Positions 6,680-62,858 of a stretch of 64,000 bases of DNA are shown here, one piece after another. Each line of letters begins with the position of its first letter. The first letter of the stretch is position 1. Made by a program: the position numbers and the translations under genes. The stretch is taken from sequence record OZ195934.1, one strand, 5' to 3'. The notes beneath the pieces are model-generated. The model made no database searches and was not told the origin of the DNA. It was given only the letters and a program-made list of their open reading frames with translations.

Positions 6680-7315
6680 ATGGAATTATTAATCGAAACT
6701 TGGGGTGTATCTAGCGGTCTCGCTGAATCCCTTGGTGAAAAGCCTCTTGTTGAAGCGAAGCTACCTGCGACGAAAGGTGGCGACTTGTACATCGAGGGCA
6801 TTTTCATGCAATCGAATGTCGTAAACCGTAACGGACGTCGATACCCGAAAAAAGTTATGGAAAATGCTGTATCTAAATACATGCAAGAACAAGTCAACAC
6901 GAATCAAGCGTTGGGCGAATTGAATCACCCTAGCCGTTCGAATGTCGATCCTGCTGAAGCTGCAATTAGAATTACTGAGTTGTGGTGGGATGGTGACAAC
7001 GTAATGGGTAAAGCTATCGTACTAAATACACCGAAGGGACAAATTGTTCGTGGTCTAATCGAAGGCGGTTGGGTACCGGGCGTGAGTTCAAGAGGTCTTG
7101 GTTCAGTTAAGCAAGTTGACGGCATTAACGAAGTGACAGACTTTCGTCTGACAGTTGGAGTTGATGTAGTATGGGGCCCTAGTGCACCAAGTGCTTACGT
7201 TAAACCAGTAACTGAGTCAAATGAAGCTGCTAAAGATGTAAAAACAGAAGAAATTACCGAAAGTAATGACGCTGAATTTGCGAAACTAGCGGAAACGTTA
7301 AAAACTCTCTTATAA
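6680..7315 (+). CDS. gp21: Prohead protease (gp21)
   Basis: LYIEGIFMQSNVVNRNGRRYP, ALGELNHP, PGVSSRGLGS, VDVVWGPSAP; ATG at 6680 preferred over the TTG at 6674. Confidence 0.97.
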   Translation: MELLIETWGVSSGLAESLGEKPLVEAKLPATKGGDLYIEGIFMQSNVVNRNGRRYPKKVMENAVSKYMQEQVNTNQALGELNHPSRSNVDPAEAAIRITELWWDGDNVMGKAIVLNTPKGQIVRGLIEGGWVPGVSSRGLGSVKQVDGINEVTDFRLTVGVDVVWGPSAPSAYVKPVTESNEAAKDVKTEEITESNDAEFAKLAETLKTLL

Positions 7316-9858: not shown

Positions 9859-10968
9859 TTATGCGCAATGCAAAATGTTTTCAGCAATCAACATGCGTTT
9901 CTCTAGTTGAGCAGCACCGTACTGCGGTCCCGGTTCAACGTCAACACGCACAATCATCGTTTTCGCGATGATCTCTCTCAGTGTGCTTTGTTTCGTCACG
10001 TCGTTCATTTGTGATAGCGCGACTTCAAACTCACGACCATTCTTATAAGCACCCAATTGCTGCAACGCAATGACTACAGACGAGTCGTAAACGTGTAATA
10101 CGTTCAACTGCATTAAGATTTCAGAAGTCTTCTGAAAACGCTTTGTAGCCCCGAATTTAGACGTGTAACGATTTCGATGATCGAACGCAGCCCATTTGCC
10201 GATGAGTTGAGTCTCTTCGCCTTGAAACTTCATGTGATTGTAATGCTTCAATGACATTAACTCAGCCGCACGTGGTTGCGAACAGAACCCGATTTGACCT
10301 AAGAACGAAAAGTACATGTGAGCATTCTTCTCAGATAGTGCTTTCATCGTCTCTAACCACACGCGTTCTTTCGGTAGAGCATCAAGCATACCATCAGCAA
10401 CCATCTTCTCGCACAGCTCACGCGTCTCTTTGGCAACAACGAAGCCCAGACTATGATAACGAGCATAGAAACGCGCTACACGCAGCACACGAAGCGGATC
10501 TTCTGCAAATGCATCAGTCGTATGACGAAGCACGCGATCTTGTAGATCACGCATACCGTTATACGGGTCAATCACAGATTCAATCGAGCCGAACATGAAA
10601 AATGATTGCTCATCGTCTCGACGAACAGCCATTGCATTGATAGTCAAGTCGCGTCGAGAAAGGTCGTCTTCAAGTGTAACGCCATCAGTCGTGAACGTGA
10701 AATCAGTCGTCTTGTCACCAATGCTGCGTTCGACACGAGCAAGTGCGACTTCATTGCCGTTTTCATCAAGCCATACGGGGAAGTCTGCACCGATGGGTTC
10801 GCCATACAGTTCACGCATTTCTGCATCAGATGTGTTGATCATTAAATAATCTATATCCTTAGGAAATATCGCGTAACCGTCTCGCATGTTCAAGATTGTG
10901 TCGCGTACAGCTCCACCCACGACAAATTGTTTTGATTCTGTAGCCGCAGCTAGTGAATTATTTTGCAT
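9859..10968 (-). CDS. cca: tRNA nucleotidyltransferase (class II CCA-adding enzyme, no HD domain)
   Basis: VVGGAVRD, DIDY, EDDLSRRDLTINAMA, DPYNGMRDL, EDPLRVLRVARF. Confidence 0.95.
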   Translation of the reverse strand: MQNNSLAAATESKQFVVGGAVRDTILNMRDGYAIFPKDIDYLMINTSDAEMRELYGEPIGADFPVWLDENGNEVALARVERSIGDKTTDFTFTTDGVTLEDDLSRRDLTINAMAVRRDDEQSFFMFGSIESVIDPYNGMRDLQDRVLRHTTDAFAEDPLRVLRVARFYARYHSLGFVVAKETRELCEKMVADGMLDALPKERVWLETMKALSEKNAHMYFSFLGQIGFCSQPRAAELMSLKHYNHMKFQGEETQLIGKWAAFDHRNRYTSKFGATKRFQKTSEILMQLNVLHVYDSSVVIALQQLGAYKNGREFEVALSQMNDVTKQSTLREIIAKTMIVRVDVEPGPQYGAAQLEKRMLIAENILHCA

Positions 10969-11653: not shown

Positions 11654-13519
11654 ATGAGTAATTCAGACAAAACAGATCTAGTGTATCGCCATTTAGACTT
11701 CGGTGATGCATCAAAGATTTTAAATCTACCAGACGCAGACACCGCAGGTGCTCCGTTACCGAAATCGCAAATCGAATCTCTATTAGCTGCAAAGCAAGCT
11801 AATGTAGTCGGCGGCAACGGTGTTGAAATTGATGGCAACTCTATTGTCGTTGATCTAGGCACAGTTACATCAAGCGTAGCTATTAACGGTGCATCAGATG
11901 CATATTCTCGCAATTCAACAGGCTCTGCTTCTGAATTTAACGTGAGTGGCTATATTGATCGTGGTATCGGTGAAGTATTGACTTCTGGTAGCAGCTCGCC
12001 ATACAACTTCCGTATCACGAATGCAAGCGGTAACAACTATCACTTTTACACTCGCGATAATGGCGATGGTACGTTCAATGCACTTGTGTTCGGGCTACAC
12101 GTAGCGAAATATCACTTGTACAGAGTAACAGGTGACCCAGGCACATTCAACACAGTAACTCTTGAATTTGTAGCATCAGTCCCATTCGTGTTACCTGGGT
12201 ATGTTACAGTTGACGGTGAACGTTATATCAACACAGATTACGATGATGGCATTGTTCTTGTTGGCGGTACAGATTCATACATGAAATTCGCGGCAGGCGC
12301 ACTAAACGCTGACGTTGTAACTGATATGGCAAGTGCAGCTACTGGTAAATTAGTAGATGCGGGTGTCGTTAAAACATACATCGACGATGCGAAGGCAACC
12401 GCGATTGTTGCTGCAAATAACACGTTCTCAAACTCACTGGCAGGTTTGACTGGTTCACCTAGCAATGTTCAATCAGCGATTGAATCAGCAGCTAGTGAAA
12501 TCAACAGTCTTGATAGTTCTGTGTCGGGTCTGCAAGATCAAGACATAATCCACACTGCTGGTATCAGTGATGTTGCAAGTGCTGTTGGTATCGCTGTTGG
12601 TTCTAGCAATATGGGTTCATTCACAAACACAATGCTAATCGACAACAGTGATATCAAAACTGTACTTGAAGCGATTGCTACTGAAATTGATGATGTTAAC
12701 GATGAGCTACACAGCAAACTTGGTGTAATCGAATCCGATGTGGGCATGGGTGCGATGGTATCGCCTATCTACTCTGACGATGTTAATGCAAAAACATTGA
12801 TCGAAGAAGCGGGTGCAGCAATCGAATCACTACAAGTTGGTGCAGGTGCGTTCTGGGCTGCGGTTGATTATCACCACCATGCAGATTCACATTCACTACC
12901 GGCTGGATTCGGTGATGGTTCAACTGACGTTGGTACACTTGTTATCGACCCAACTGGTTCGAATCTAACTGTTGCTGAACTTGAAACGGGCGACCGCATT
13001 CTTGTGATCTCAGACGGTACTGATACTGAAACTGGTATCTACGTCGTAAACTCTGATAACTCGACGCAACGTTCAACTGACGCTCAAGCTTCTGCTGATT
13101 TCACTACAAACAAAACAGTGAACATCATCAATGGTGGCTCTCACGCAGGTGCAACGTATGCATATGTTGGCGCAAGTGATCCTACAATTGGCACTGACGC
13201 TCTACCGTTTGAGTTCAAACAAGGCACAAACGTTGGTGATACTACAATCACTGAGAGTAAACTTGCTCTTGTTTTAGCTACGAAGTTGAATGGCAAGACA
13301 GATAAAGAGACTGCAACTTTCAATATAAATACTTCAGATGGTCAGGGTGGCTTCACTGAAACAATCGCTCACACACTAGGTGACGATGTTATTGTACAAA
13401 TTGAAACTGCTGTAACCGGCGAAGTTCGCTCTAACCTTGAGATCGTTAAAACGAATAACCAAGTTGTAGTAAATTCAAATATTTCAGTCCTTGGTTTGAA
13501 AATTGTAATTATTGGTTAA
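11654..13519 (+). CDS. Fibre-like virion structural protein (621 aa)
   Basis: Ala/Ser/Gly/Thr-rich; heptad-like middle; GDRILVI..TGIYVV..QRSTDA..GG.HAGATYAY..PTIGT motif common in phage fibre proteins; RBS GGAG. Confidence 0.7.
   Translation: MSNSDKTDLVYRHLDFGDASKILNLPDADTAGAPLPKSQIESLLAAKQANVVGGNGVEIDGNSIVVDLGTVTSSVAINGASDAYSRNSTGSASEFNVSGYIDRGIGEVLTSGSSSPYNFRITNASGNNYHFYTRDNGDGTFNALVFGLHVAKYHLYRVTGDPGTFNTVTLEFVASVPFVLPGYVTVDGERYINTDYDDGIVLVGGTDSYMKFAAGALNADVVTDMASAATGKLVDAGVVKTYIDDAKATAIVAANNTFSNSLAGLTGSPSNVQSAIESAASEINSLDSSVSGLQDQDIIHTAGISDVASAVGIAVGSSNMGSFTNTMLIDNSDIKTVLEAIATEIDDVNDELHSKLGVIESDVGMGAMVSPIYSDDVNAKTLIEEAGAAIESLQVGAGAFWAAVDYHHHADSHSLPAGFGDGSTDVGTLVIDPTGSNLTVAELETGDRILVISDGTDTETGIYVVNSDNSTQRSTDAQASADFTTNKTVNIINGGSHAGATYAYVGASDPTIGTDALPFEFKQGTNVGDTTITESKLALVLATKLNGKTDKETATFNINTSDGQGGFTETIAHTLGDDVIVQIETAVTGEVRSNLEIVKTNNQVVVNSNISVLGLKIVIIG
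13324..13331 (+). promoter_or_regulatory. Internal late promoter TATAAATA, probably for inh
   Basis: Exact consensus about 200 bp upstream of inh. Confidence 0.5.
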
Positions 13520-13527
13520 CAAGGGGG

Positions 13528-14055
13528 TTGGACGTGAGTCAACTTACTAAACATGCAGATACATTGACGAAAGGCGAACTGGATGCATTCGCAAAAGAAT
13601 ACTACGGTCTAGATCTAGACCGTCGTAAATCAAAAGGCGCGATGACGAAAGCACTTGTCGAGCACGATCAGACAAATGCGCCTGTTAAACCGTTACCTTG
13701 GGAAGAGCTTTTAGTTGAAACGCCAGCCGAAGAAACTGAAGTAACAGAAGAAGTGGCAGGAGCGAAAGCTCCTGCCACTCCGGTTGAAGCTGAACAAGAA
13801 ACAAAAGTTGTTGAGGCGAAAGTCGATGCATCATTTGTACCCGCACGCTTGCCATTCAAGCGCGACGGTGTACCGTTCATGACTGCTTCAGCATCGGTAG
13901 TTGATTTTGTCGCTGAATTGAAATCAGGCAAGGTTAGCTTAGAGCAATGTCCACGCAGCGATGAGAAAGCAGTTAAATCTATTCTGTTTTACATCGAACG
14001 TGATGGTAAGGTGCTTGTACGCGAAACGCGTAACAGTCGCTTTATCGAACTATAA
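13528..14055 (+). CDS. inh: Inhibitor of prohead protease (Inh)
   Basis: N-term ELDAFAKEYYGLDLDRRKSK and C-term FYIERDGKVLVRETRNSRFIEL match the T4 Inh termini. Confidence 0.85.
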   Translation: MDVSQLTKHADTLTKGELDAFAKEYYGLDLDRRKSKGAMTKALVEHDQTNAPVKPLPWEELLVETPAEETEVTEEVAGAKAPATPVEAEQETKVVEAKVDASFVPARLPFKRDGVPFMTASASVVDFVAELKSGKVSLEQCPRSDEKAVKSILFYIERDGKVLVRETRNSRFIEL

Positions 14056-15698: not shown

Positions 15699-15723
15699 AA
15701 AAAAAGCGCAAATTAATGCGCTT
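15699..15723 (-). terminator. Intrinsic terminator after the 325-aa ORF
   Basis: AAGCGCA/TGCGCTT stem with a minus-strand T-run. Confidence 0.7.
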
Positions 15724-15726
15724 AGT

Positions 15727-16704
15727 TTATTTTTCTAGTTCGTAGTAGACTGTACCATCGCTCGACATAGAAGTAACTGAGAGATTGTAACCCTCTTGTG
15801 CTCCAAGCTTGCGCATGATTCTAGTGTATAGTGATTTACGCTTCTCGTTACCATCGCCAGTAGCTGTAACAACTTTACGGCAGTTGTATTGATGAGCAAA
15901 CGTAATCGCTTCTTGTGCAACTGTAGCGAATACAGTAAATGCGTTTTCAGAATCAGTGATATCGTAAGTCCATTTGCCGTTCACAGACGCGTGGAAGTGA
16001 ATCTCGACTGTATCAACTGTTATGTTATCTTCCCAATCAAAGTCGATATCATCAGAATCATCGTGTTGAATACCATGAGGCACTAGAACGACCTGATACA
16101 TTTGATTGCCGACTTCGAACAATCCGAATATTGGCTTGCCCTCTTTCGTTGGCGTATTGCCTTTCGGGTACACTACTTTCGCTGCTCGGTCAAGTGACTC
16201 AGTGAGATTGACAGATGAAAGCCAGTCTTGCCAGTTCTTACGACTACCGATTTTTGTAAATGGGATGTCGTCGTGATCGAGCCACTGAATCGAACGGTCG
16301 TATGATTGCGACACGTTAAATCCGTTGTAGTCGTCACCGACCCATAGCCATTTGTGATGCCAGATTTGATTGACTTGTCGAGCTTTCGCGACTTTGCGTT
16401 CTGCAACGTCAACGACAATCATCTTACCAGCCGCAGGTTCTTGTACATGGTCGAACTCAGTTGATTCGTAGAAAGCAATCGTAGACTTCTTGTAATCGAT
16501 TCTAACGACGTTCGGGCAGAAAGTCGGGTTCTCAATCGAAAGAAGTGTGCGTGCTTCTGCTACGCGCTCTTTGAACTCTTCAGGTACGTAATTGATGTGT
16601 AAGTATAATGCACCGCCGATATCTTTACCCACGCCCCATTTGCTTCGTTTAACTGCTGAACCTTTTCGCGTCTTCAGCGTTGCGCGTTCAAAGATTAGAT
16701 TCAT
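15727..16704 (-). CDS. Two-domain late protein: N-terminal domain like the phosphorothioation-associated methyltransferase repeat, C-terminal domain shared with 60274..61134
   Basis: GKDIGGALYLH..FYESTEFDHVQEP..IWHHKWLWVGDDY..KIGSRKNWQDWL; C-domain FEVGNQMY..KWTY..VFATV..KRKSLYTR..GY. Confidence 0.7.
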   Translation of the reverse strand: MNLIFERATLKTRKGSAVKRSKWGVGKDIGGALYLHINYVPEEFKERVAEARTLLSIENPTFCPNVVRIDYKKSTIAFYESTEFDHVQEPAAGKMIVVDVAERKVAKARQVNQIWHHKWLWVGDDYNGFNVSQSYDRSIQWLDHDDIPFTKIGSRKNWQDWLSSVNLTESLDRAAKVVYPKGNTPTKEGKPIFGLFEVGNQMYQVVLVPHGIQHDDSDDIDFDWEDNITVDTVEIHFHASVNGKWTYDITDSENAFTVFATVAQEAITFAHQYNCRKVVTATGDGNEKRKSLYTRIMRKLGAQEGYNLSVTSMSSDGTVYYELEK

Positions 16705-17300
16705 TATCGTCTCGATTGGTCGTTTATAATGTGACGCATCAAGTTAACTGCGTAATCCGTTTGACCGGTCATAGCAGCCGATGCAGCTTTATCGACGTAG
16801 AACGTACTGTCTTCGATCATGTTCAGATGCTTATAGATCTCTCTGAAGTCGTGACGGTCGTATTCTTTATCAGACCAACGCAAAGCACCTGCTTTTTTGT
16901 CGTCGTCGTGAACACGCTTGTACTCATCGATAACACGAATCATTTCCGAAGCTTGCTTCTTCATCATCATGTTGTCCATCTTCAGACGTTTCGCAGCCTT
17001 TGCCACTTCGTCTTGAGGACGGTCGTGCTGTATAGCGTCCATTAGAATGTTCATGCTATGCAGAGTATCAATACCTGCCTTTTCCATAGCTTGTTGTTGT
17101 CGCTGAAGCGTAGAATTGTGCTTACCTAACTCACCCGATGCTGTAGCACTCGCGATAAGACCAGAAAATACACTCCACCAACCGCCTTTCTTCTGTATAC
17201 GCTTCTTAACTTCACCTTTCGAACCGCTAGTAAAGTCTTTGAATTGCGCCCACTTACCAGAAAGTGTTGCTTTTTCACGTTCAGTCAAAAATTCAATCAT
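16704..17300 (-). CDS. Hypothetical helical late protein, possible internal head protein
   Basis: 198-aa ORF, RBS AAGGGG, upstream TCTAAATA; N-term MIEFLTE. Confidence 0.7.
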   Translation of the reverse strand: MIEFLTEREKATLSGKWAQFKDFTSGSKGEVKKRIQKKGGWWSVFSGLIASATASGELGKHNSTLQRQQQAMEKAGIDTLHSMNILMDAIQHDRPQDEVAKAAKRLKMDNMMMKKQASEMIRVIDEYKRVHDDDKKAGALRWSDKEYDRHDFREIYKHLNMIEDSTFYVDKAASAAMTGQTDYAVNLMRHIINDQSRR

Positions 17301-17326: not shown

Positions 17327-17334
17327 TATTTAGA
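17327..17334 (-). promoter_or_regulatory. Late-promoter variant TCTAAATA
   Basis: One mismatch to TATAAATA, 26 nt upstream of the ATG. Confidence 0.6.
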
Positions 17335-17342
17335 CACAAACG

Positions 17343-17368
17343 AAAAAAGGTAGCCGAAGCTACCTTTT
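17343..17368. terminator. Intrinsic terminator
   Basis: AAAAAAGGTAGC-CGAA-GCTACCTTTT. Confidence 0.85.
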
Positions 17369-17381
17369 GGGATATCTGATA

Positions 17382-18011
17382 TTAACCGTAGATTTTTTTG
17401 ATTACGTTGTCGAAGAACTCATGACGTTCATTAACTTTCGCAATGACGTAACGTGCATTCGAACGCAGTGCGTTTTCAACCGCCCATTTAGGTGACGATA
17501 CACTAAAGCCCGATTTTGTGAAGATTTCAAGCAATTCTTCACGTCGAGAAGTCTTAGCAAGACTCATGATGTATCGAACTTGTTTCTTAACTGGTAGTGC
17601 TTTGAACTCGTCGATAGCACACACGCCCATAGCTTGAACAGACTGACCTAGACCGTCGTTTAGAACTTCGGTTAGAATCTTCTCAAGACCAAGAAGCGGC
17701 GAGCGTGTTAACGTGTAGCTGTCAACTTCGATAATTCGCTTCGCTTTCACGTTAGCAGTCAGTGTATATGTACGACGACCGCTTGCAGTGTCTTGTGAAA
17801 TACAAGCAAATTGCTCATTTCGCGCTAAAACACCATGCACTTTACGACGTAGAGTTTCGTCAAACTTACCGTCATTCAGTGAATACACGATATCGTAGAT
17901 AGTCAGCTCACGAAGCTCAAGCAGCTCTTCGAGTGCGTTCTGGAATACGTTGCGACGCTTACATACGCCAGTTTCAGCTAGATCTTTACGCACTTCGATT
18001 ACATTTTTCAT
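17382..18011 (-). CDS. Hypothetical protein, possible N-terminal winged helix
   Basis: 209-aa ORF; LTIYDIV..LRRKVHGVLARNEQF..GRRTYTL. Confidence 0.6.
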   Translation of the reverse strand: MKNVIEVRKDLAETGVCKRRNVFQNALEELLELRELTIYDIVYSLNDGKFDETLRRKVHGVLARNEQFACISQDTASGRRTYTLTANVKAKRIIEVDSYTLTRSPLLGLEKILTEVLNDGLGQSVQAMGVCAIDEFKALPVKKQVRYIMSLAKTSRREELLEIFTKSGFSVSSPKWAVENALRSNARYVIAKVNERHEFFDNVIKKIYG

Positions 18012-18883: not shown

Positions 18884-19399
18884 CTACCCCAGAACTACGA
18901 ATGAATTGGATAGATTGTCACGAACAAGCAGTTCGCCGCGCAGTGCAACCCAATATGCGATTGTCTGCAACTCGTGAGTATCGCGATTGCCGATTAAGTA
19001 CGCGTGAATGTCATCGTGCTTAACAACTTGGAACAATTCACCCTCATGGCGATACGAGGGCGTCCATTTCGGCTTGAATTCATCTTTGATGACGATTTCC
19101 ACGTCGATTGACTCTACGGGATTGCTGATAACCACCTTTAAATCAACGTCAGTCGCTTCTAGAGTTGTTTCAACGATTGGCGCGTCTGATTCATCGACTA
19201 AATCACATGTCGTCTCTGAGCTGATTACAGACGTGTCTAGATAATCATCAGGAAAGCTAGTGATCTTATCGACGTTAGCCATGATCAATCGAATCGCTGC
19301 TGATTTGGTTAGCGTCTTGTCGTATTCGATGTCAGTATGTTCAAGCTGAAACTCGATGACTTCGCGCTTCGTCTTGCCTTTCAAGTATTCTTCGTTCAT
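18884..19399 (-). CDS. Inh-like paralogue
   Basis: N-term YLKGKTKREVIEF..IEYDKTLTK; C-term FKPKW..LQTIAYWVALRGELLVRDNLSNSFVVL parallels T4 Inh. Confidence 0.65.
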   Translation of the reverse strand: MNEEYLKGKTKREVIEFQLEHTDIEYDKTLTKSAAIRLIMANVDKITSFPDDYLDTSVISSETTCDLVDESDAPIVETTLEATDVDLKVVISNPVESIDVEIVIKDEFKPKWTPSYRHEGELFQVVKHDDIHAYLIGNRDTHELQTIAYWVALRGELLVRDNLSNSFVVLG

Positions 19400-36648: not shown

Positions 36649-38481
36649 ATGAAAGACGAAATTTTAGATATTGTTAGTGGTTCTGGTAACAACAAAGAAA
36701 ACGCAAACAAAGATTCAAAAGTGATCCCAACAATGCGTGACTTGGTAGCAGGTACAGTATCGAAGCAATATGCACTTGAAGACATATTGCCGAAAGAGAT
36801 TGCCGACGCTCATATCAGCGGTGACATTCACTTTCACGATTTAGATTACAGTCCGCTGTTCCCGCAATTCAACTGCATGATCATCGATATCAAAGGCATG
36901 TTTGAACATGGTTTTAAAATGGGTAACGCTGAAATCACAGAGCCGAATAGCATTTCGACTGCTGCGACTATCGTAACTCAGATTATTCAACAAGTGTCTA
37001 GTCACATCTATGGCGGTAACACGATTAACCGCATTGATGAAGTGCTTGCACCGTATGTTCGCAAATCGTACTACAAATGGCTTGAAATCGGTCGCGAAGA
37101 ACATCCCGACTCTGATTCGAAAGCTGCTATCTTCGCCCGCAAGCGCGTAGAGAAAGAAACGTACGACGCGTTCCAGACGTTTGAGTATCAAGTTAACACT
37201 ATGCAGACATCGAATGGTCAAACGCCATTCACGACTATCAACTTCGGTCTTGGTACATCATGGGAAGAGAAGCTAATTCAAAAAAGCATTCTTCAGAATC
37301 GTATCGATGGTCTAGGTAAGACGCGCAAGACTGCGATTTTCCCTAAGCTTGTGTTCACGCTGCGCGATGGTGTCAATCTGAAACAAGGTGACCCGTGTTA
37401 CGGCATCAAGAAGCTTGCTCTTGAATGTGCGAGTAAACGCATGTATCCCGACGTTCTGAACTACGACCGATTAGTCGAAACGACTGGTGGCTTTAAAGCA
37501 CCAATGGGTTGTCGCTCGTTCTTAGGCGAATACGAAGAAAACGGTGAAGTGATTCACGATGGTCGAAACAATCTTGGCGTTGTGTCAGTGAACGTTCCGC
37601 GTATCGCGATTGAAGCAAGTGGCGACTTGGAAAGATTCTTTGAAATCTTACATGACCGCTGCACGATTGCGTTTGATGCTCTAATGCTGCGTATAAAGCG
37701 TTTTGACGACGTTAAAGCGTCAGTTGCACCGATTCTATACACAGAAGGCGCGATGGGCGTACGATTGAATCCAGACGACAATGTAAGCGAAGTGTTCAAG
37801 AACGGTCGAGCAAGTATCTCACTTGGTTACATCGGGTTGCACGAAGCTGTTACGCTATTGTCTCATGACAAAGAATCGCATACGTTCAATTCGCATCACA
37901 AACAGTTCTTAGCTGAGAAGATCGTCGAGACGTTGCGCAAGTACACTGATATGTGGAAAGAAGCAACTGGTTACGGTTTCAGCTTGTACAGCACACCGAG
38001 CGAATCATTGTGTGATCGTTTCTGTCGTCTTGATCAAGAGAAATACGGTGTTATTCAAGGCATCAATGACAAAGACTACTACACGAACTCGTTCCACTTA
38101 GATGTGTTCAAGAAAGTAAATCCGTTTGAGAAGATTGACTTCGAATCGCGATACCCTCAACACGCAAGTGGCGGTTTCATCGTTTACGCTGAGTTCCCGA
38201 ACATGCGTGACAACTTGAAAGGTCTTGAGCGCGTATGGGATTACTCGTACACTCGCGTGCCGTACTTCGGTACTAACACGCCGATTGATCAGTGTACGTG
38301 TGGTTGGTCTGGTGAAGCACATGCAGATTCGGATGGGTTCAGTTGTCCTACGTGTGGCGAACGCGACCCTGAGAAACTTCACGTGACTCGTCGAGTCTGT
38401 GGCTATCTCGGTAACCCGGGTGCTCGTGGTTGGAATCACGGCAAGACAGTTGAAATGAAAAATCGAGTTAAACACCAATAA
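36649..38481 (+). CDS. nrdD: Anaerobic ribonucleotide reductase NrdD
   Basis: GDIHFHDLDY, MGCRSFL, NNLGVVSVN, YSTPSESLC, RRVCGYLG glycyl radical loop. Confidence 0.98.
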   Translation: MKDEILDIVSGSGNNKENANKDSKVIPTMRDLVAGTVSKQYALEDILPKEIADAHISGDIHFHDLDYSPLFPQFNCMIIDIKGMFEHGFKMGNAEITEPNSISTAATIVTQIIQQVSSHIYGGNTINRIDEVLAPYVRKSYYKWLEIGREEHPDSDSKAAIFARKRVEKETYDAFQTFEYQVNTMQTSNGQTPFTTINFGLGTSWEEKLIQKSILQNRIDGLGKTRKTAIFPKLVFTLRDGVNLKQGDPCYGIKKLALECASKRMYPDVLNYDRLVETTGGFKAPMGCRSFLGEYEENGEVIHDGRNNLGVVSVNVPRIAIEASGDLERFFEILHDRCTIAFDALMLRIKRFDDVKASVAPILYTEGAMGVRLNPDDNVSEVFKNGRASISLGYIGLHEAVTLLSHDKESHTFNSHHKQFLAEKIVETLRKYTDMWKEATGYGFSLYSTPSESLCDRFCRLDQEKYGVIQGINDKDYYTNSFHLDVFKKVNPFEKIDFESRYPQHASGGFIVYAEFPNMRDNLKGLERVWDYSYTRVPYFGTNTPIDQCTCGWSGEAHADSDGFSCPTCGERDPEKLHVTRRVCGYLGNPGARGWNHGKTVEMKNRVKHQ

Positions 38482-60212: not shown

Positions 60213-60251
60213 AAAAGGGTTGACTTCGGTCAGCCCTTTTTCATATAAATA
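60213..60251 (+). promoter_or_regulatory. Terminator hairpin followed by late promoter TATAAATA
   Basis: GGGTTGAC-TTCG-GTCAGCCC-TTTTTT; TATAAATA at 60244-51. Confidence 0.75.
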
Positions 60252-60273
60252 CTTTCATTTAGAGAGAACGAAC

Positions 60274-61134
60274 ATGATTATTTTCGAGGCATTTTCGCGC
60301 CCTGTGCCTTATAAATGGGTCAGACCGAGCGAAATTGAATTCACAGTAAACGGTACGAAGTATCGAGCAACGTACAATATCACGTACAGAGACGGCAGCT
60401 CACAAATGTACATCGACTTCCAATGGAATGACGGTGGGCAATGGTCGTACAAGCTGAAGAAGGGCGGAGACCCGAAAGACGCAATGGCTGTATTTGCGAC
60501 TGTACTCGCAGCGGGTGAAGAGAAAGCAAATCAAGAGAAGCCGGATTTCATTACGTTTAGCGCGTTCTCAGATGAAGATGATGCAGACGCACACAAACGA
60601 TTCAGACTGTACAAACGCATGGCTGATCGCTACGCTAAACAACTTGGCTACACGATGCATGTTGACGGTCGCAATTTCATCTTGAAGAACAACAACCCAT
60701 CGACCGTGAGACGTATACCGAATGACGGCATCATGATTGATGACGAACTGACGTACGTTGAAATGCCACGCACGAACGAATTCACATGGGCTACAATGTT
60801 CGAGTGTACTCGTCCGGGTGATTTTGAAATGGTGCGTTTTAAGAATGGCTTTGCTACAATCAAGCGTCAGACTGAAGATAAAGTCGAGATCATGGTTAAA
60901 GCAGGTGGTCAAACGTATGACAATTTAGATTCACCAGAAGTGTGGGACAAGTTGAACGGTGAGTTGTTTGTTACAGCGTCATGGCGCCCAGATGAACCAC
61001 AACCGATGTCAGAGAAAGCATCATTGCTTGAGAATGGTTGGATGATTTTGACTGAGACATCCACCGTGTACAAAGTAGAAAGTGTTGCAGACTTCGAAGC
61101 GATTTGGGGTTACAAATTAGAGTCTATTAGATAG
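60274..61134 (+). CDS. Late protein, probable internal head protein; N-domain shared with 15727..16704
   Basis: Start corrected to 60274 (MIIFEAF); FTVNGTKY..QWSY..VFATV..KRFRLYKRM..LGY. Confidence 0.7.
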   Translation: MIIFEAFSRPVPYKWVRPSEIEFTVNGTKYRATYNITYRDGSSQMYIDFQWNDGGQWSYKLKKGGDPKDAMAVFATVLAAGEEKANQEKPDFITFSAFSDEDDADAHKRFRLYKRMADRYAKQLGYTMHVDGRNFILKNNNPSTVRRIPNDGIMIDDELTYVEMPRTNEFTWATMFECTRPGDFEMVRFKNGFATIKRQTEDKVEIMVKAGGQTYDNLDSPEVWDKLNGELFVTASWRPDEPQPMSEKASLLENGWMILTETSTVYKVESVADFEAIWGYKLESIR

Positions 61135-61135
61135 T

Positions 61136-61165
61136 AAAAAGGGAGCCAATCGGCTCCCTTTTTTT
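61136..61165. terminator. Bidirectional intrinsic terminator
   Basis: AAAAAGGGAGCC-AATC-GGCTCCCTTTTTTT. Confidence 0.9.
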
Positions 61166-62858
61166 ATTGTGCTGCAATTGATTTGCTGAATTTCTCACGC
61201 GTCGTCGCAGGTAGTTCAGGGTTATCTGTACCAAGAAGTAGAATCGCGATGTCTTCAAGTTCAGCCATGCGTTCTTGCTTCATGTGAACACCAATAACGC
61301 TTTCATTGTAAGCGCCTTTGTCGCGCACTGAAAGACGAATGACAGCATGTGAGCCTACGTGATCCATAGTCACAACGTCAGCGTCAAACACAGTATTACG
61401 ATTGATCATGAACTCATTTTCACCTTGTTGACCGTTTCTGCCAGGGATGTAAACTGGAAGACCGTCACTTTCGATGATGAATACAACTTTCATATTCATA
61501 GTACCGAATCCAAGCGTATCAAGCATTTCTTGTTTGCTTGAGTCACGTGATGTCATCACATCAAGCACATTAGCTTCAGCGAATTCAACGGCAATCATCG
61601 GGTCAGTCGATGCGCTCATGTAAGCAGTCGATGCAAACAAGCCAGTCTTCAGAATGCTTCTAACGACGTTAGACGTACATTCCATGCCACGATATAGCAG
61701 AGGAGTAGGTTGAATGTTATGACCCATAACGCCAGCCTCTTCGAATGCAGAGTCGATGTCGTCGATAATTTTAGCTGTTTTCTCTGTGCCTTTACCCGTC
61801 AATAGATGCTGATTCACGTTCCAGTATTGTGCGCCAGTATAACGAGCAATAGAGCCTTGAACTTCAGGCGGAACGCCAGACCATGTTGGGTCTTGTTGAA
61901 GCTGAACTGCTAGTGTGTTGTACTGAGATTCGAATTCACGTGACTTCACAGAAAGCATGTTTCTGACAATCTCGCTAACAGTTCCCTGATCTTGATGCTT
62001 AGTGTTGCGCATAGCAGGTGCCATACGACTAGCAATAGTTTGCAAGTCAATTGGGATATCTAATGTACCAAGCGCGATACGAGCAACGTCAGCCACTTCA
62101 GGCACACTATGATTCGCAGCGCCTTGCAAGCGTTCACGATATACACCGCGAGTTGCAGGGGTTAGAGCAGGCATCACCATTGGCGTGTTCGGAACACGTT
62201 TCGCTGGTTTGTCTTCGATCCATTCAGCTTTCACTTCGTCGTGAAACTCTTCAAATCCCGGTACCATATCAGCCGTAACGATAATCGAGCGTGCAGTCGC
62301 GATGTCTGGTTCTTTAGACATTTGAGCAGCTAGAATATTGATAGTCTTTTCTTCAGACTCAAGTAGCTTATCGGTATTGTATCCCGGTTTGTTGATAACG
62401 AAGAAGCTGAAATCTTCAGCCATTTCATGATCGCCAACGTTTAGAATCTTAGTTGTTTCACAGCCGTAGCGTAGTTTCTTGAATAGCGTTTTGATACGCA
62501 TATCGAACATCTTGCCACTGCCTTTCTTTTGTACGCGCATTGATACAGCGTTTGCACGAACTTTCAGCATGAATTCTTGAACAAGTTTAACCAACGTTTC
62601 TTGGAACTTTTGTTGATCACCCATATCACGAATAGTTAATCCGCCTTTTTTACCGCGCATTGCAGTAACAGTACAGAACCAAGCGCGTTTAGTACGGTCG
62701 CCTAGCCCCGATTTTGTTTTACTTGTAAACGTGACAACGACATCTTTGGTCTCACCAGCCATATCGATGACAAAGTAACGATTGACTTTGGTCGAGCGAG
62801 CCGGGTAGTAGTTATAAGTTGAAGTTGCTGTCTCATTTAATTCTTGAAATCCAATCAT
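61164..62858 (-). CDS. alt: Alt-like NAD:protein ADP-ribosyltransferase (capsid-delivered)
   Basis: IARYT..Y..VN..L, LYRG, AYMSAS, GENEF (R-S-E ART motif); N-term MIGFQELNE; late promoter. Confidence 0.85.
   Translation of the reverse strand: MIGFQELNETATSTYNYYPARSTKVNRYFVIDMAGETKDVVVTFTSKTKSGLGDRTKRAWFCTVTAMRGKKGGLTIRDMGDQQKFQETLVKLVQEFMLKVRANAVSMRVQKKGSGKMFDMRIKTLFKKLRYGCETTKILNVGDHEMAEDFSFFVINKPGYNTDKLLESEEKTINILAAQMSKEPDIATARSIIVTADMVPGFEEFHDEVKAEWIEDKPAKRVPNTPMVMPALTPATRGVYRERLQGAANHSVPEVADVARIALGTLDIPIDLQTIASRMAPAMRNTKHQDQGTVSEIVRNMLSVKSREFESQYNTLAVQLQQDPTWSGVPPEVQGSIARYTGAQYWNVNQHLLTGKGTEKTAKIIDDIDSAFEEAGVMGHNIQPTPLLYRGMECTSNVVRSILKTGLFASTAYMSASTDPMIAVEFAEANVLDVMTSRDSSKQEMLDTLGFGTMNMKVVFIIESDGLPVYIPGRNGQQGENEFMINRNTVFDADVVTMDHVGSHAVIRLSVRDKGAYNESVIGVHMKQERMAELEDIAILLLGTDNPELPATTREKFSKSIAAQ

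Follow-up and report, generated by a model that had tools for sequence, protein, structure and literature searches.

A predicted two-module protein of KVP40-like vibriophages carries a solo TIGR04096-type accessory domain downstream of a late-promoter-like octamer

We analyzed a 64,000-nucleotide stretch of sequence record OZ195934.1 (hereafter, the window), in which a two-gene unit on the minus strand encodes a 325-residue protein, here termed the target, and an upstream partner. The open reading frame (ORF) of the target and all sequence strings quoted for it in a first-pass annotation were found in the window. The features relevant to the analysis are the following.

15727..16704, minus strand: ORF of the target, 325 aa (VP6E351A_0018, QZI87455.1, homologue of KVP40.0371, phrog_16075)
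16704..17300, minus strand: upstream partner gene, 198 aa (phrog_16422, no function assigned)
17327..17334, minus strand: late-promoter-like octamer of T4 type, TCTAAATA, 26 bases 5′ of the partner ATG (17300)
17345..17368, minus strand: intrinsic-terminator-like hairpin (10-pair stem, then a T run) that closes the upstream unit (gene 17382..18011)
15704..15723, minus strand: terminator-like hairpin that closes the two-gene operon
16687..16704, minus strand: N-terminal hexapeptide MNLIFE (I-x-E), candidate prohead-protease leader
16210..16680, minus strand: N-domain, aa 9 to 165, a solo accessory domain (TIGR04096-type flank; polyvalent methyltransferase partner)
16198..16206, minus strand: interdomain junction L167-T168-E169, candidate cleavage site before S170
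15730..16197, minus strand: C-domain, aa 170 to 325, GNAT-like fold, distant DUF6934 relative
6680..7315, plus strand: gene annotated, in the identical stretch of 6E35-1b, as a gp21-type head maturation protease; presumed to carry out the processing
60274..61134, plus strand: paralogue of the C-domain in a 286-aa ORF, VP6E351A_0094, which adjoins an Alt-like gene and has TATAAATA at 60244-60251

The target gene lies between gene 23 and uvsW, amid paralogues of inh-like prohead-protease inhibitors. Its neighbors in the window are head, inh-like, uvsW and hypothetical genes, and dnd- or ssp-type sulfur-modification genes are absent from among them. The stop codon of the partner gene overlaps the start codon of the target gene (TAATG), the pair is enclosed by terminators on both sides, and the hairpin at 17345..17368 is kept as a hairpin across the aligned upstream regions. 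The octamer TCTAAATA stands at the same position in six of the seven phages compared, with CATAAATA in its place in phage D479; it also occurs 5′ of the tail-tube gene (3893) and of the gp34 tail-fibre gene (29081, minus strand), and the sheath, gp22 and gp23 genes have TATAAATA upstream. An octamer variant with C at −12 is known in phage Aeh1 (PMC2988020). It is therefore plausible, as had been proposed, that a T4-type late promoter drives the target and its partner as a two-gene operon. The partner gene lies 5′ of the N-domain gene in every case examined; no homology was seen between its product and that of the gene preceding a solo homologue of metagenomic origin.

Full-length relatives of the target, with 52 to 77% identity, were found in seven phages, and the gene belongs to the core of every one of the 51 KVP40-like phages found, irrespective of host. 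Against its relative in phage D481, the target shows 98% identity for the N half and 73% for the C half, and a word-indexed protein search returned eight close relatives for the N half and three for the C half. Phages 1.081.O and D479 encode the N-domain on its own. Judged from these sequence comparisons, the target is a two-module protein of KVP40-like (Schizotequatrovirus-type) vibriophages, and its C-domain is fast-evolving and exchangeable.

The first-pass annotation had likened the N-terminal domain to the repeated domain of DNA phosphorothioation-associated putative methyltransferases. The NCBIfam model TIGR04096 (dnd_rel_methyl) indeed aligns aa 24 to 164 of the target with profile positions 322 to 465 of 478, with an E value of 2.2e-3 when the entire protein is searched and of 4e-4 when the N-domain is searched by itself. 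The corresponding scores of 16.8 and 19.3 bits lie far below the curated 150-bit cut-off, but the homology is backed by two further searches. In tblastn, the N-domain matched cyanobacterial plasmid genes bearing the PGAP name [quoted passage not shown] (E 7e-5, 28% identity over aa 25 to 167). In addition, a family profile of 38 members, run against TIGR04096-type proteins, matched Pseudanabaena WP_281010160 at aa 14 to 164 (55 bits) and aa 522 to 667 (22 bits), and Synechocystis pSYSM WP_011153563 at aa 17 to 169 (44 bits) and aa 545 to 614. Because the profile matches each cyanobacterial protein twice, the domain is confirmed as a repeated one, and by these alignments the homology of the N-domain to the TIGR04096 flanking domain is real. 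The absence of a methyltransferase from the target was borne out as well. Pfam and NCBIfam give no methyltransferase family in it; Pfam, PHROGs and NCBIfam searches with the target and its neighbors returned only PHROGs of unknown function and the weak TIGR04096 match; and a six-frame search of the window with a profile of the family's partner methyltransferases found no methyltransferase-like ORF. Thus, TIGR04096 proteins carry the accessory domain on both sides of a methyltransferase core, whereas the target has this domain but neither the core nor phosphorothioation genes nearby, and is phage-encoded, with a GNAT-like partner module and a late-type promoter.

The first-pass annotation went further and proposed that the solo domain may be an injected, noncatalytic decoy or inhibitor of Dnd- or Ssp-type phosphorothioate-dependent or other modification-dependent defense. 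Such a decoy might, for example, occupy the site or the partner recognized by the domain of the TIGR04096 enzyme. The homology to both TIGR04096 flanking domains speaks for this idea, as do the sulfur-modification-type neighborhoods of the two cyanobacterial members: the Pseudanabaena gene adjoins DUF4007 and PAPS-reductase genes, and the Synechocystis pSYSM gene lies near cysteine desulfurase and AAA ATPase genes. Moreover, Dnd_ABCDEFGH is present in 25_P_9, a susceptible host strain (Table S9 of PMC12028318), and the authors of that study tagged the gene "Defense?". The tag and the detection of the protein in virions stand in their supplementary table and are undiscussed there, so the earlier statement that no such system had been described was nearly right. 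The same study reported no defense or anti-defense HMM match for the gene, however, and no account of TIGR04096 function was found in the searchable literature. The presence of the gene in every KVP40-like phage found, whatever the host, also argues against a decoy of this kind.

The breadth of the family bears on the same question. At E <= 1e-3 the N-domain family falls into 838 clusters when grouped at 50% identity; at 90% identity its small proteins number more than 1,000. Thus, the link to TIGR04096 stands, but the phosphorothioation setting is limited to one small branch of a far wider family, and the contexts among the top 150 family representatives are phages or polyvalent proteins. Large phages encode the N-domain as stand-alone proteins of some 160 aa; in large phage contigs other than those of the vibriophages, the neighbors of these solo homologues are auxiliary (NAD salvage, preQ, KTSC, HNH) rather than structural. 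The domain is also a recurrent module of polyvalent proteins of 2.6 to 4.9 thousand aa that carry LPD38, LPD3, DarA_C, SNF2 and ART-PolyVal domains, a class that includes relatives of the P1 DarA/DarB head proteins (PMC5512222). One giant polyvalent gene with the N-domain sits in a phage-like contig, and in one such protein, P0031 (4,289 aa), LPD38, LPD3, DarA_C, SNF2 and Methyltransf_23 stand beside the N-domain. A class-I methyltransferase is paired with the N-domain in 27 of the 28 giant polyvalent proteins, at a median distance of 45 aa and in either order, and such pairing, seen in 55 of 157 family proteins, is the dominant architecture. The partner is Methyltransf_23-like and differs from the adenine methylase of DarB type, found with LPD36, that PMC5512222 describes. 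The target differs from the polyvalent proteins in having two modules only. None of the Pfam LPD models matches the N-domain, and Pfam as a whole has no model for it.

The residues conserved across the family also make an inert mimic difficult to reconcile with the data. About 20 residues are near-invariant, eight of them polar: K27, H36, D85, E89, H116, H117, K118 and S138 are found in 92 to 100% of 156 domains. The target retains these eight and, in all, the 21 positions conserved in at least 92% of the 156 domains, which is unexpected for an inert mimic and goes against the label "noncatalytic". These near-invariant polar residues make it look likelier that the N-domain has an active or ligand-binding site than that it is an inert decoy. 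The anti-Dnd/Ssp role thus finds no support, most family members being solo phage genes or polyvalent methyltransferase pairs, and we consider it very unlikely.

The N-domain was modeled with confidence by AF2 (pLDDT 95, pTM 0.89) and is predicted to be an α/β domain, present in the target as an intact solo copy. Foldseek gave no fold match in the PDB (best E 0.08, TM 0.26), a PDB sequence-profile search found nothing below E 0.48, and a structure search of BFVD returned a single true homologue. As the fold matches nothing solved, any biochemical activity ascribed to it is a guess. A PLD-like HKD reading of the His-His-Lys-...-Asp-Asp residues was rejected on the grounds of misfitting spacing, a short helix in the model and the lack of any PLD structure among those returned.

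The proteins fused to the N-domain raise a different possibility. Fusion partners include ART-PolyVal, DUF5662 and NlpC/P60 and, among modules of interest for RNA, complete CCA-adding tRNA nucleotidyltransferases (P0071, P0140), Tpt1/KptA-like proteins (P0056, P0028), the RNA-binding domain NFACT-R (P0020, P0059), the YafQ RNase (P0017) and GNAT domains (P0083, P0153). KTSC-domain genes adjoin solo homologues in two unrelated contigs, and the phage's own CCA-adding enzyme gene (9859-10968) is 5 kb from the target gene and directly adjoins it in D479. The target might accordingly be a late cytoplasmic enzyme or adaptor acting on RNA ends or tRNA, beside the CCA-adding enzyme, the RNA ligases and the 26 tRNAs, and its signal in virions, in preparations that contain contaminants (see below), would then be carry-over. 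Each RNA-linked fusion is confined to one or two clusters, however, against the 55 of 157 proteins with methyltransferase pairing, and the late promoter and the conservation of the junction and leader described below suit a packaged protein better. In addition, the virion counts of the partner and of the C-domain paralogue exceed those of typical contaminants. We regard an RNA-directed role of this kind as unlikely.

The C-domain is less well defined. Its AF2 model (pLDDT 83) was built from six sequences, and GNAT acetyltransferases make up most of the top Foldseek matches, which also include RNase E chains; the top 16 have probabilities of 0.97 to 1.0, but E values of 2e-3 to 3e-2 and TM scores of only 0.28 to 0.46. 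No Acetyltransf_* model of the GNAT Pfam set matches at E <= 1, and a PDB profile search gave only E 0.5 to 0.8 to SpeG-type enzymes. DUF6934 matches all six C-modules below threshold (best E 2.5e-4), with 17.7 to 19.7 bits for the target against a gathering threshold of 27 bits, and the domain is also matched by phrog_6387 and phrog_27801. By Foldseek the C-module may thus resemble the GNAT fold. Neither a GNAT sequence profile nor an acyl-CoA-binding signature was found in it, and we describe the module as GNAT-like and DUF6934-like, the GNAT assignment being weak. Among the 157 family proteins it is confined to the vibriophage clade. The paralogue at 60274-61134 was found with a C-domain HMM (E 1.9e-11); in BLASTP the two share 30% identity over 84 aa (E 3e-6).

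Both proposed (L/I)-x-E sites, the MNLIFE start and VNLTE-S between the domains, were found in the target, and the seven phages show no variation at I4, E6, L167 or E169. The leader, aa 1 to 10, has a mean pLDDT of 70 as against at least 93 for each 10-residue block of aa 11 to 170, and aa 171 to 172, the tail of the N-domain model, have a mean of 63. A third (L/I)-x-E of the target, at 197, lies within a predicted β-strand. Solo homologues beyond the vibriophage clade mostly begin without an N-terminal extension of this kind. The gp68-like, gp21, gp22 and gp23 proteins of the window bear the same type of leader, and the N-terminus of the partner, MIEF(L/I)TE, is invariant in seven phages, with a variable residue following it.

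Comparative evidence comes from the unfused forms. In D479, where the halves are separate genes, a C-module paralogue starts with MEFRTFLTE, followed by AFDKPAR; this leader junction equals VNLTE then SLDRAAK in the target. The paralogue VP6E351A_0094 of the window starts with MIIFE, followed by AFSRP. The glutamate of the junction does not vary: it is kept in every fused protein and reappears at position 5 or 9 where the C-module gene is unfused. This recurrence of the junction as the 5- to 9-residue leader of a lone C-module supports processing by the prohead protease. Thus, the proposal of gp21-type sites gains comparative, and hence indirect, support from D479 and the paralogue leaders. 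In the two solo N-domain proteins an L-x-E is kept 2 to 3 residues from the C-terminus, where cleavage would achieve little. By our own ORF calls, 10 of 87 ORFs in the window have an (L/I)-x-E within the first seven residues, which compares with about 6% of proteins expected by chance. Seven of these 10, as against 23 of 88 other ORFs, were detected in virions (Fisher p = 0.008), an association that is not significant once the four canonical head proteins are left out (p = 0.21).

The virion data come from published mass spectrometry of phage 6E351A, the phage analyzed here (PMC12028318 Table S4), and are given as protein-level spectral counts from PEG-precipitated particles. In two replicates, the counts were 9 and 14 for the target, VP6E351A_0018, 21 and 34 for the partner, 16 and 61 for the C-domain paralogue VP6E351A_0094, 17 and 28 for the gp21-type protease, and 122 and 233 for the Alt-like protein (PMC12028318). 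SSB, dUTPase, helicase, thymidylate synthase, NAMPT and spanins were found in the same preparation at comparable counts (PMC12028318). Since SSB, dUTPase, helicase and NAMPT, all probable contaminants, appear at counts similar to those of the target, its detection falls short of proof of packaging. The earlier claim of a packaged protein thus stands as to low-count detection in particles, with counts similar to those of probable contaminants, and packaging into virions is plausible. A KVP40 virion proteome was not found in literature searches.

Detection in particles, together with the late promoter, a leader resembling those of prohead core proteins and a gene position between gene 23 and uvsW among the inh-like paralogues, would also suit a protein that serves head assembly or is a minor part of the structure (core, scaffold-like or decoration), and that does nothing once the next host cell is reached. 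Several features are at odds with this: the N-domain is mobile, occurring in hundreds of non-T4 contexts and fused to enzymes; its enzyme-like invariant residues are retained in the target; the C-module is exchangeable and at times absent; and the counts of the target are low relative to those of structural proteins. A purely structural role is most improbable.

The T4 internal proteins and Alt are head-internal, are processed by the prohead protease and are injected into the host. With them the target has in common a late-type promoter, a short (L/I)-x-E leader and presence in particles. The setting is T4-like: the particles that contain the target are also rich in an Alt-like protein, and the window codes for a gp21-type protease. 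It differs from them in that its leader has just six residues and in that its own cleavage and injection are presumed, and no search returned sequence similarity of the target to the T4 internal proteins or Alt.

The usual methyltransferase and polyvalent setting of the N-domain, together with its presence in particles, makes a co-injected effector plausible. The target would be incorporated into the prohead, where the gp21-type protease would trim it after E6 and probably split it after E169, and the pieces would enter the next cell along with the DNA. There, they may act early in infection on nucleic acid or on a host function based on nucleic-acid modification, as has been proposed for solo domains of polyvalent proteins (Iyer et al. 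2017, PMC5512222); that study predicts that the solo forms encoded near virion genes work at an early stage of invasion. We infer internal packaging, cleavage and injection, and any anti-defense role, from the combination of these features. A packaged, processed and co-injected two-module effector is the best explanation as a whole, and we put it forward as a tentative one that is quite possibly correct. In a more specific version, the N-domain would be a new fold that either acts as an enzyme or reads modified nucleic acid, and would be the obligate partner of a class-I methyltransferase in giant phage polyvalent proteins and in enzymes of phosphorothioation islands. KVP40-like phages would have detached it, joined it to the GNAT-like module with a prohead-protease site between them, and packaged the polyprotein; two separate effectors would be freed inside the capsid, and their injection would disarm a host system that relies on nucleic-acid modification or tRNA targeting. 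This version is speculative and distinctly unlikely.

The N-domain is abundant, highly conserved and confidently modeled, yet has neither a Pfam model nor a solved relative. It stands beside a methyltransferase in nearly every giant polyvalent protein recovered, and its sole public label, "phosphorothioation-associated", derives from one neighborhood. The vibriophage protein offers a tractable way into this family: it is small and belongs to the core of a phage family in culture, proteomics already exist for the phage itself, and fused and unfused forms offer a natural comparison. If processing and delivery prove true, the T4-like phages would gain a packaged effector of polyprotein type, and the protein would give a handle on the role of the methyltransferase pair in conflicts among mobile elements.

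The 978-base target region is shared at 100% identity with Vibrio phage 6E35.1a/6E35-1b and with a dozen sister isolates of oyster and seawater origin, which are KVP40-like Straboviridae of 253 kb; the product is 60% identical to its homologue KVP40.0371. The gene is flanked by gene 23 on one side and uvsW on the other, with two inh-like and several hypothetical genes around it, and its ATG overlaps the stop of a partner gene that lies upstream in every phage examined. Table S8 of PMC12028318 lists it, without discussion there, as core, with a dN/dS of 0.13 and the category "Defense?". Window coordinates drift from the 6E35-1b record beyond ~37 kb, and the 6E35-1b annotation gives the anaerobic ribonucleotide reductase large subunit (~36650-38460, +) in three consecutive pieces.

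15727..16704 (-), target ORF, 325 aa (QZI87455.1, VP6E351A_0018)
16704-17300 (-), partner gene, 198 aa; phrog_16422 is its only family assignment
13528-14055 (+) and 18884-19399 (-), inh-like (prohead protease inhibitor) paralogues flanking the hypothetical-gene block that contains the target
3893, 29081 (-), 19670 (-) and 17334 (-), TCTAAATA sites in the window
60274..61134 (+), VP6E351A_0094, 286 aa, paralogue of the target's C-terminal module (E 1.9e-11)
61164-62858 (-), Alt-like gene, adjoining VP6E351A_0094

Terminator-like hairpins lie on both sides of the partner-target pair, and upstream of it is TCTAAATA, conserved in six of seven phages. TCTAAATA and TATAAATA each occur eight times in the window, versus ~2 expected, and precede the genes for tail tube, gp34, sheath, gp22, and gp23. 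TCTAAATA appears to be a late-promoter variant beside TATAAATA; the late promoters known from Aeh1 include a variant with C at -12 (PMC2988020). Given this conserved element and the terminator-bracketed pair, the late expression proposed in the first-pass annotation is plausible. The partner protein has a single weakly hydrophobic stretch (residues 41-59, mean Kyte-Doolittle hydropathy 0.74).

The N-terminal domain (N-domain, aa ~9-165) had been likened to a repeated, non-catalytic domain of TIGR04096, [quoted passage not shown]. Residues 24-164 align with positions 322-465 of 478 in the NCBIfam profile, with an E value of 2.2e-3 (4e-4 for the N half alone) and a score of 17-19 bits, below the cut-off of 150. 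This weak match, a tblastn search against plasmids, which found genes given the same name by PGAP (E 7e-5), and a 38-member family profile together establish the homology. The family profile matched each of two TIGR04096-named proteins twice (55 and 22 bits; 44 and 15 bits), once N-terminally and once past the methyltransferase, and thus the domain is indeed repeated. The TIGR04096-type gene of Pseudanabaena adjoins DUF4007 and PAPS-reductase genes, and that of Synechocystis pSYSM has a cysteine desulfurase nearby. In agreement with the annotation, family profile searches found no methyltransferase in the target, and no ORF in the window resembled the methyltransferase paired with the domain elsewhere. 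The observation stands, and is a better one than its reader knew; TIGR04096 has next to no mention in the searchable literature.

Searching 1.84 billion representatives with a HMMER profile built from six vibriophage N-domains retrieved 838 clusters at E <= 1e-3, of which 539 reached E <= 1e-10. Among the best 150 of the 838, 46 are solo proteins of <200 aa, 44 span 200-400, 26 span 400-1000, 6 span 1000-2500, and 28 exceed 2500 aa. The representative P0031 (4289 aa), from a phage-like contig, combines the N-domain with LPD3, DarA_C, SNF2 helicase, Methyltransf_23, and LPD38, and is therefore a phage-type large polyvalent protein. In 55 of 157 proteins, and in 27 of the 28 giants, the N-domain occurs together with a Methyltransf_23-like region, at a median distance of 45 residues and in both orders. 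The module formed by these two is not mentioned in the polyvalent-protein paper (PMC5512222), where the methylase module is of DarB type with LPD36, unlike the N-domain's partner. Further partners are ART-PolyVal, DUF5662, YafQ RNase, and NlpC/P60, with fusions to NFACT-R, GNAT, complete CCA-adding enzymes, and Tpt1/KptA-like proteins in two clusters each. Pfam models gave no convincing match in any of 38 family members, and all of the >1000 small homologues are annotated "hypothetical".

Twenty-one residues are 92-100% conserved over 156 domains (G26, K27, Y34, H36, Y39, F78, F84, D85, E89, P90, H116, H117, K118, W119, V122, Y126, G128, F129, S138, W141, and G153), and the target retains all of them, so that an inert module, as the label "non-catalytic" implied, is unlikely. 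The N-domain is an intact module, and probably a ligand-binding or catalytic one. AlphaFold2 modeled it confidently (pLDDT 95, pTM 0.89; lower at residues 1-10, mean 70, and 171-172, mean 63), but Foldseek found no fold match in the PDB (best E 0.08, TM 0.26) and a single homologue in BFVD.

Residues 170-325 make up a module of their own (C-module), which evolves faster: identity to KVP40 is 45% in the C half and 75% in the N half, and the C half is 24% identical to that of nt-1. Phages 1.081.O and D479 have solo genes that lack the C-module. The phage D481 gene (OZ195932.1 16029-17006) is mosaic, 98% identical to the target in the N half and 73% in the C half, indicating a recombination break at the domain boundary. 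The C-module model (pLDDT 83) showed weak but consistent likeness to GNAT acetyltransferases (Foldseek probability 0.97-1.0 for the top 16 matches, TM only 0.28-0.46), and six of six relatives matched DUF6934, all below threshold. VP6E351A_0094, a late ORF with TATAAATA 22 bases upstream (block 60244-61134, +), is paralogous to the C-module over its first ~130 residues. Phage D479 encodes an unfused C-module paralogue as a separate gene (259 aa; L024:1177-1956 = OZ195776.1 225926-226705), which neighbors RNA ligase and tail-fibre chaperone genes.

The target has three (L/I)-x-E sites: E6 at the floppy N-terminus, E169 at the interdomain junction, and one inside a predicted strand. Within seven residues of the start, such sites occur in 10 of 87 window ORFs versus 5.5 expected, among them gp68-like, gp21, gp22, and gp23 proteins. 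Seven of these 10 were detected in virions, versus 23 of 88 others (p = 0.008), an association that is not significant without the four canonical head proteins (p = 0.21). The partner's leader, MIEF(L/I)TE, is invariant and the following residue variable. The most telling comparison is with unfused C-modules: the fused proteins read VNLTE then SLDRAAK or AFDKPSK, the D479 protein opens with nine residues, MEFRTFLTE, ending in the same L-T-E junction before AFDKPAR, and VP6E351A_0094 begins MIIFE then AFSRP. A mature module beginning just past the Glu would be expected to leave such a pattern, and the inferred polyprotein processing is plausible.

Mass spectrometry of 6E351A particles (PMC12028318) gave 9 and 14 counts for the target, 21 and 34, more than the target's, for the partner, 16 and 61 for VP6E351A_0094, 122 and 233 for the Alt-like protein, and 17 and 28 for the gp21-type protease. 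The same list includes SSB (4 and 2), dUTPase (7 and 10), helicase (7 and 19), and NAMPT (16 and 23); thus the target's presence in particles is established, but its specific packaging is not. Neither inh-like paralogue was found in these data. A 621-aa hypothetical protein (11654-13519, +), a possible head decoration protein, is among the most abundant in the particles at 414 and 637 counts, ranking next after the major head protein.

Solo N-domain homologues of other phages lie among auxiliary genes, and only the vibriophage clade has the N-terminal extension and a Glu following the terminal Leu, so packaging may be particular to this clade. Two unrelated large-phage contigs from metagenomes carry a KTSC-domain gene just upstream of the solo gene (L019:5925-7528, L021:6610-7489), with NAD-salvage or preQ (QueC, QueD, QueE, QueF, FolE) clusters close by. 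The domain's fusion partners are either group-transfer enzymes or modules directed at RNA. The CCA-adding enzyme, Tpt1, NFACT-R, and YafQ partners, with the KTSC neighbors, point to RNA or tRNA ends as the putative target, whereas the methyltransferase, its dominant partner, and the phosphorothioation neighborhoods point to DNA. Both types of target exist, because Dnd is present in one susceptible host, and RloC or PARIS in others (PMC12028318). The suggested role as an anti-phosphorothioate decoy found no support, and the earlier interpretation as a whole is partly supported. The protein would belong to an already known kind, the packaged phage effector built of polyvalent-protein modules; the N-domain, its methyltransferase pairing, and its protease-site fusion are so far undescribed.
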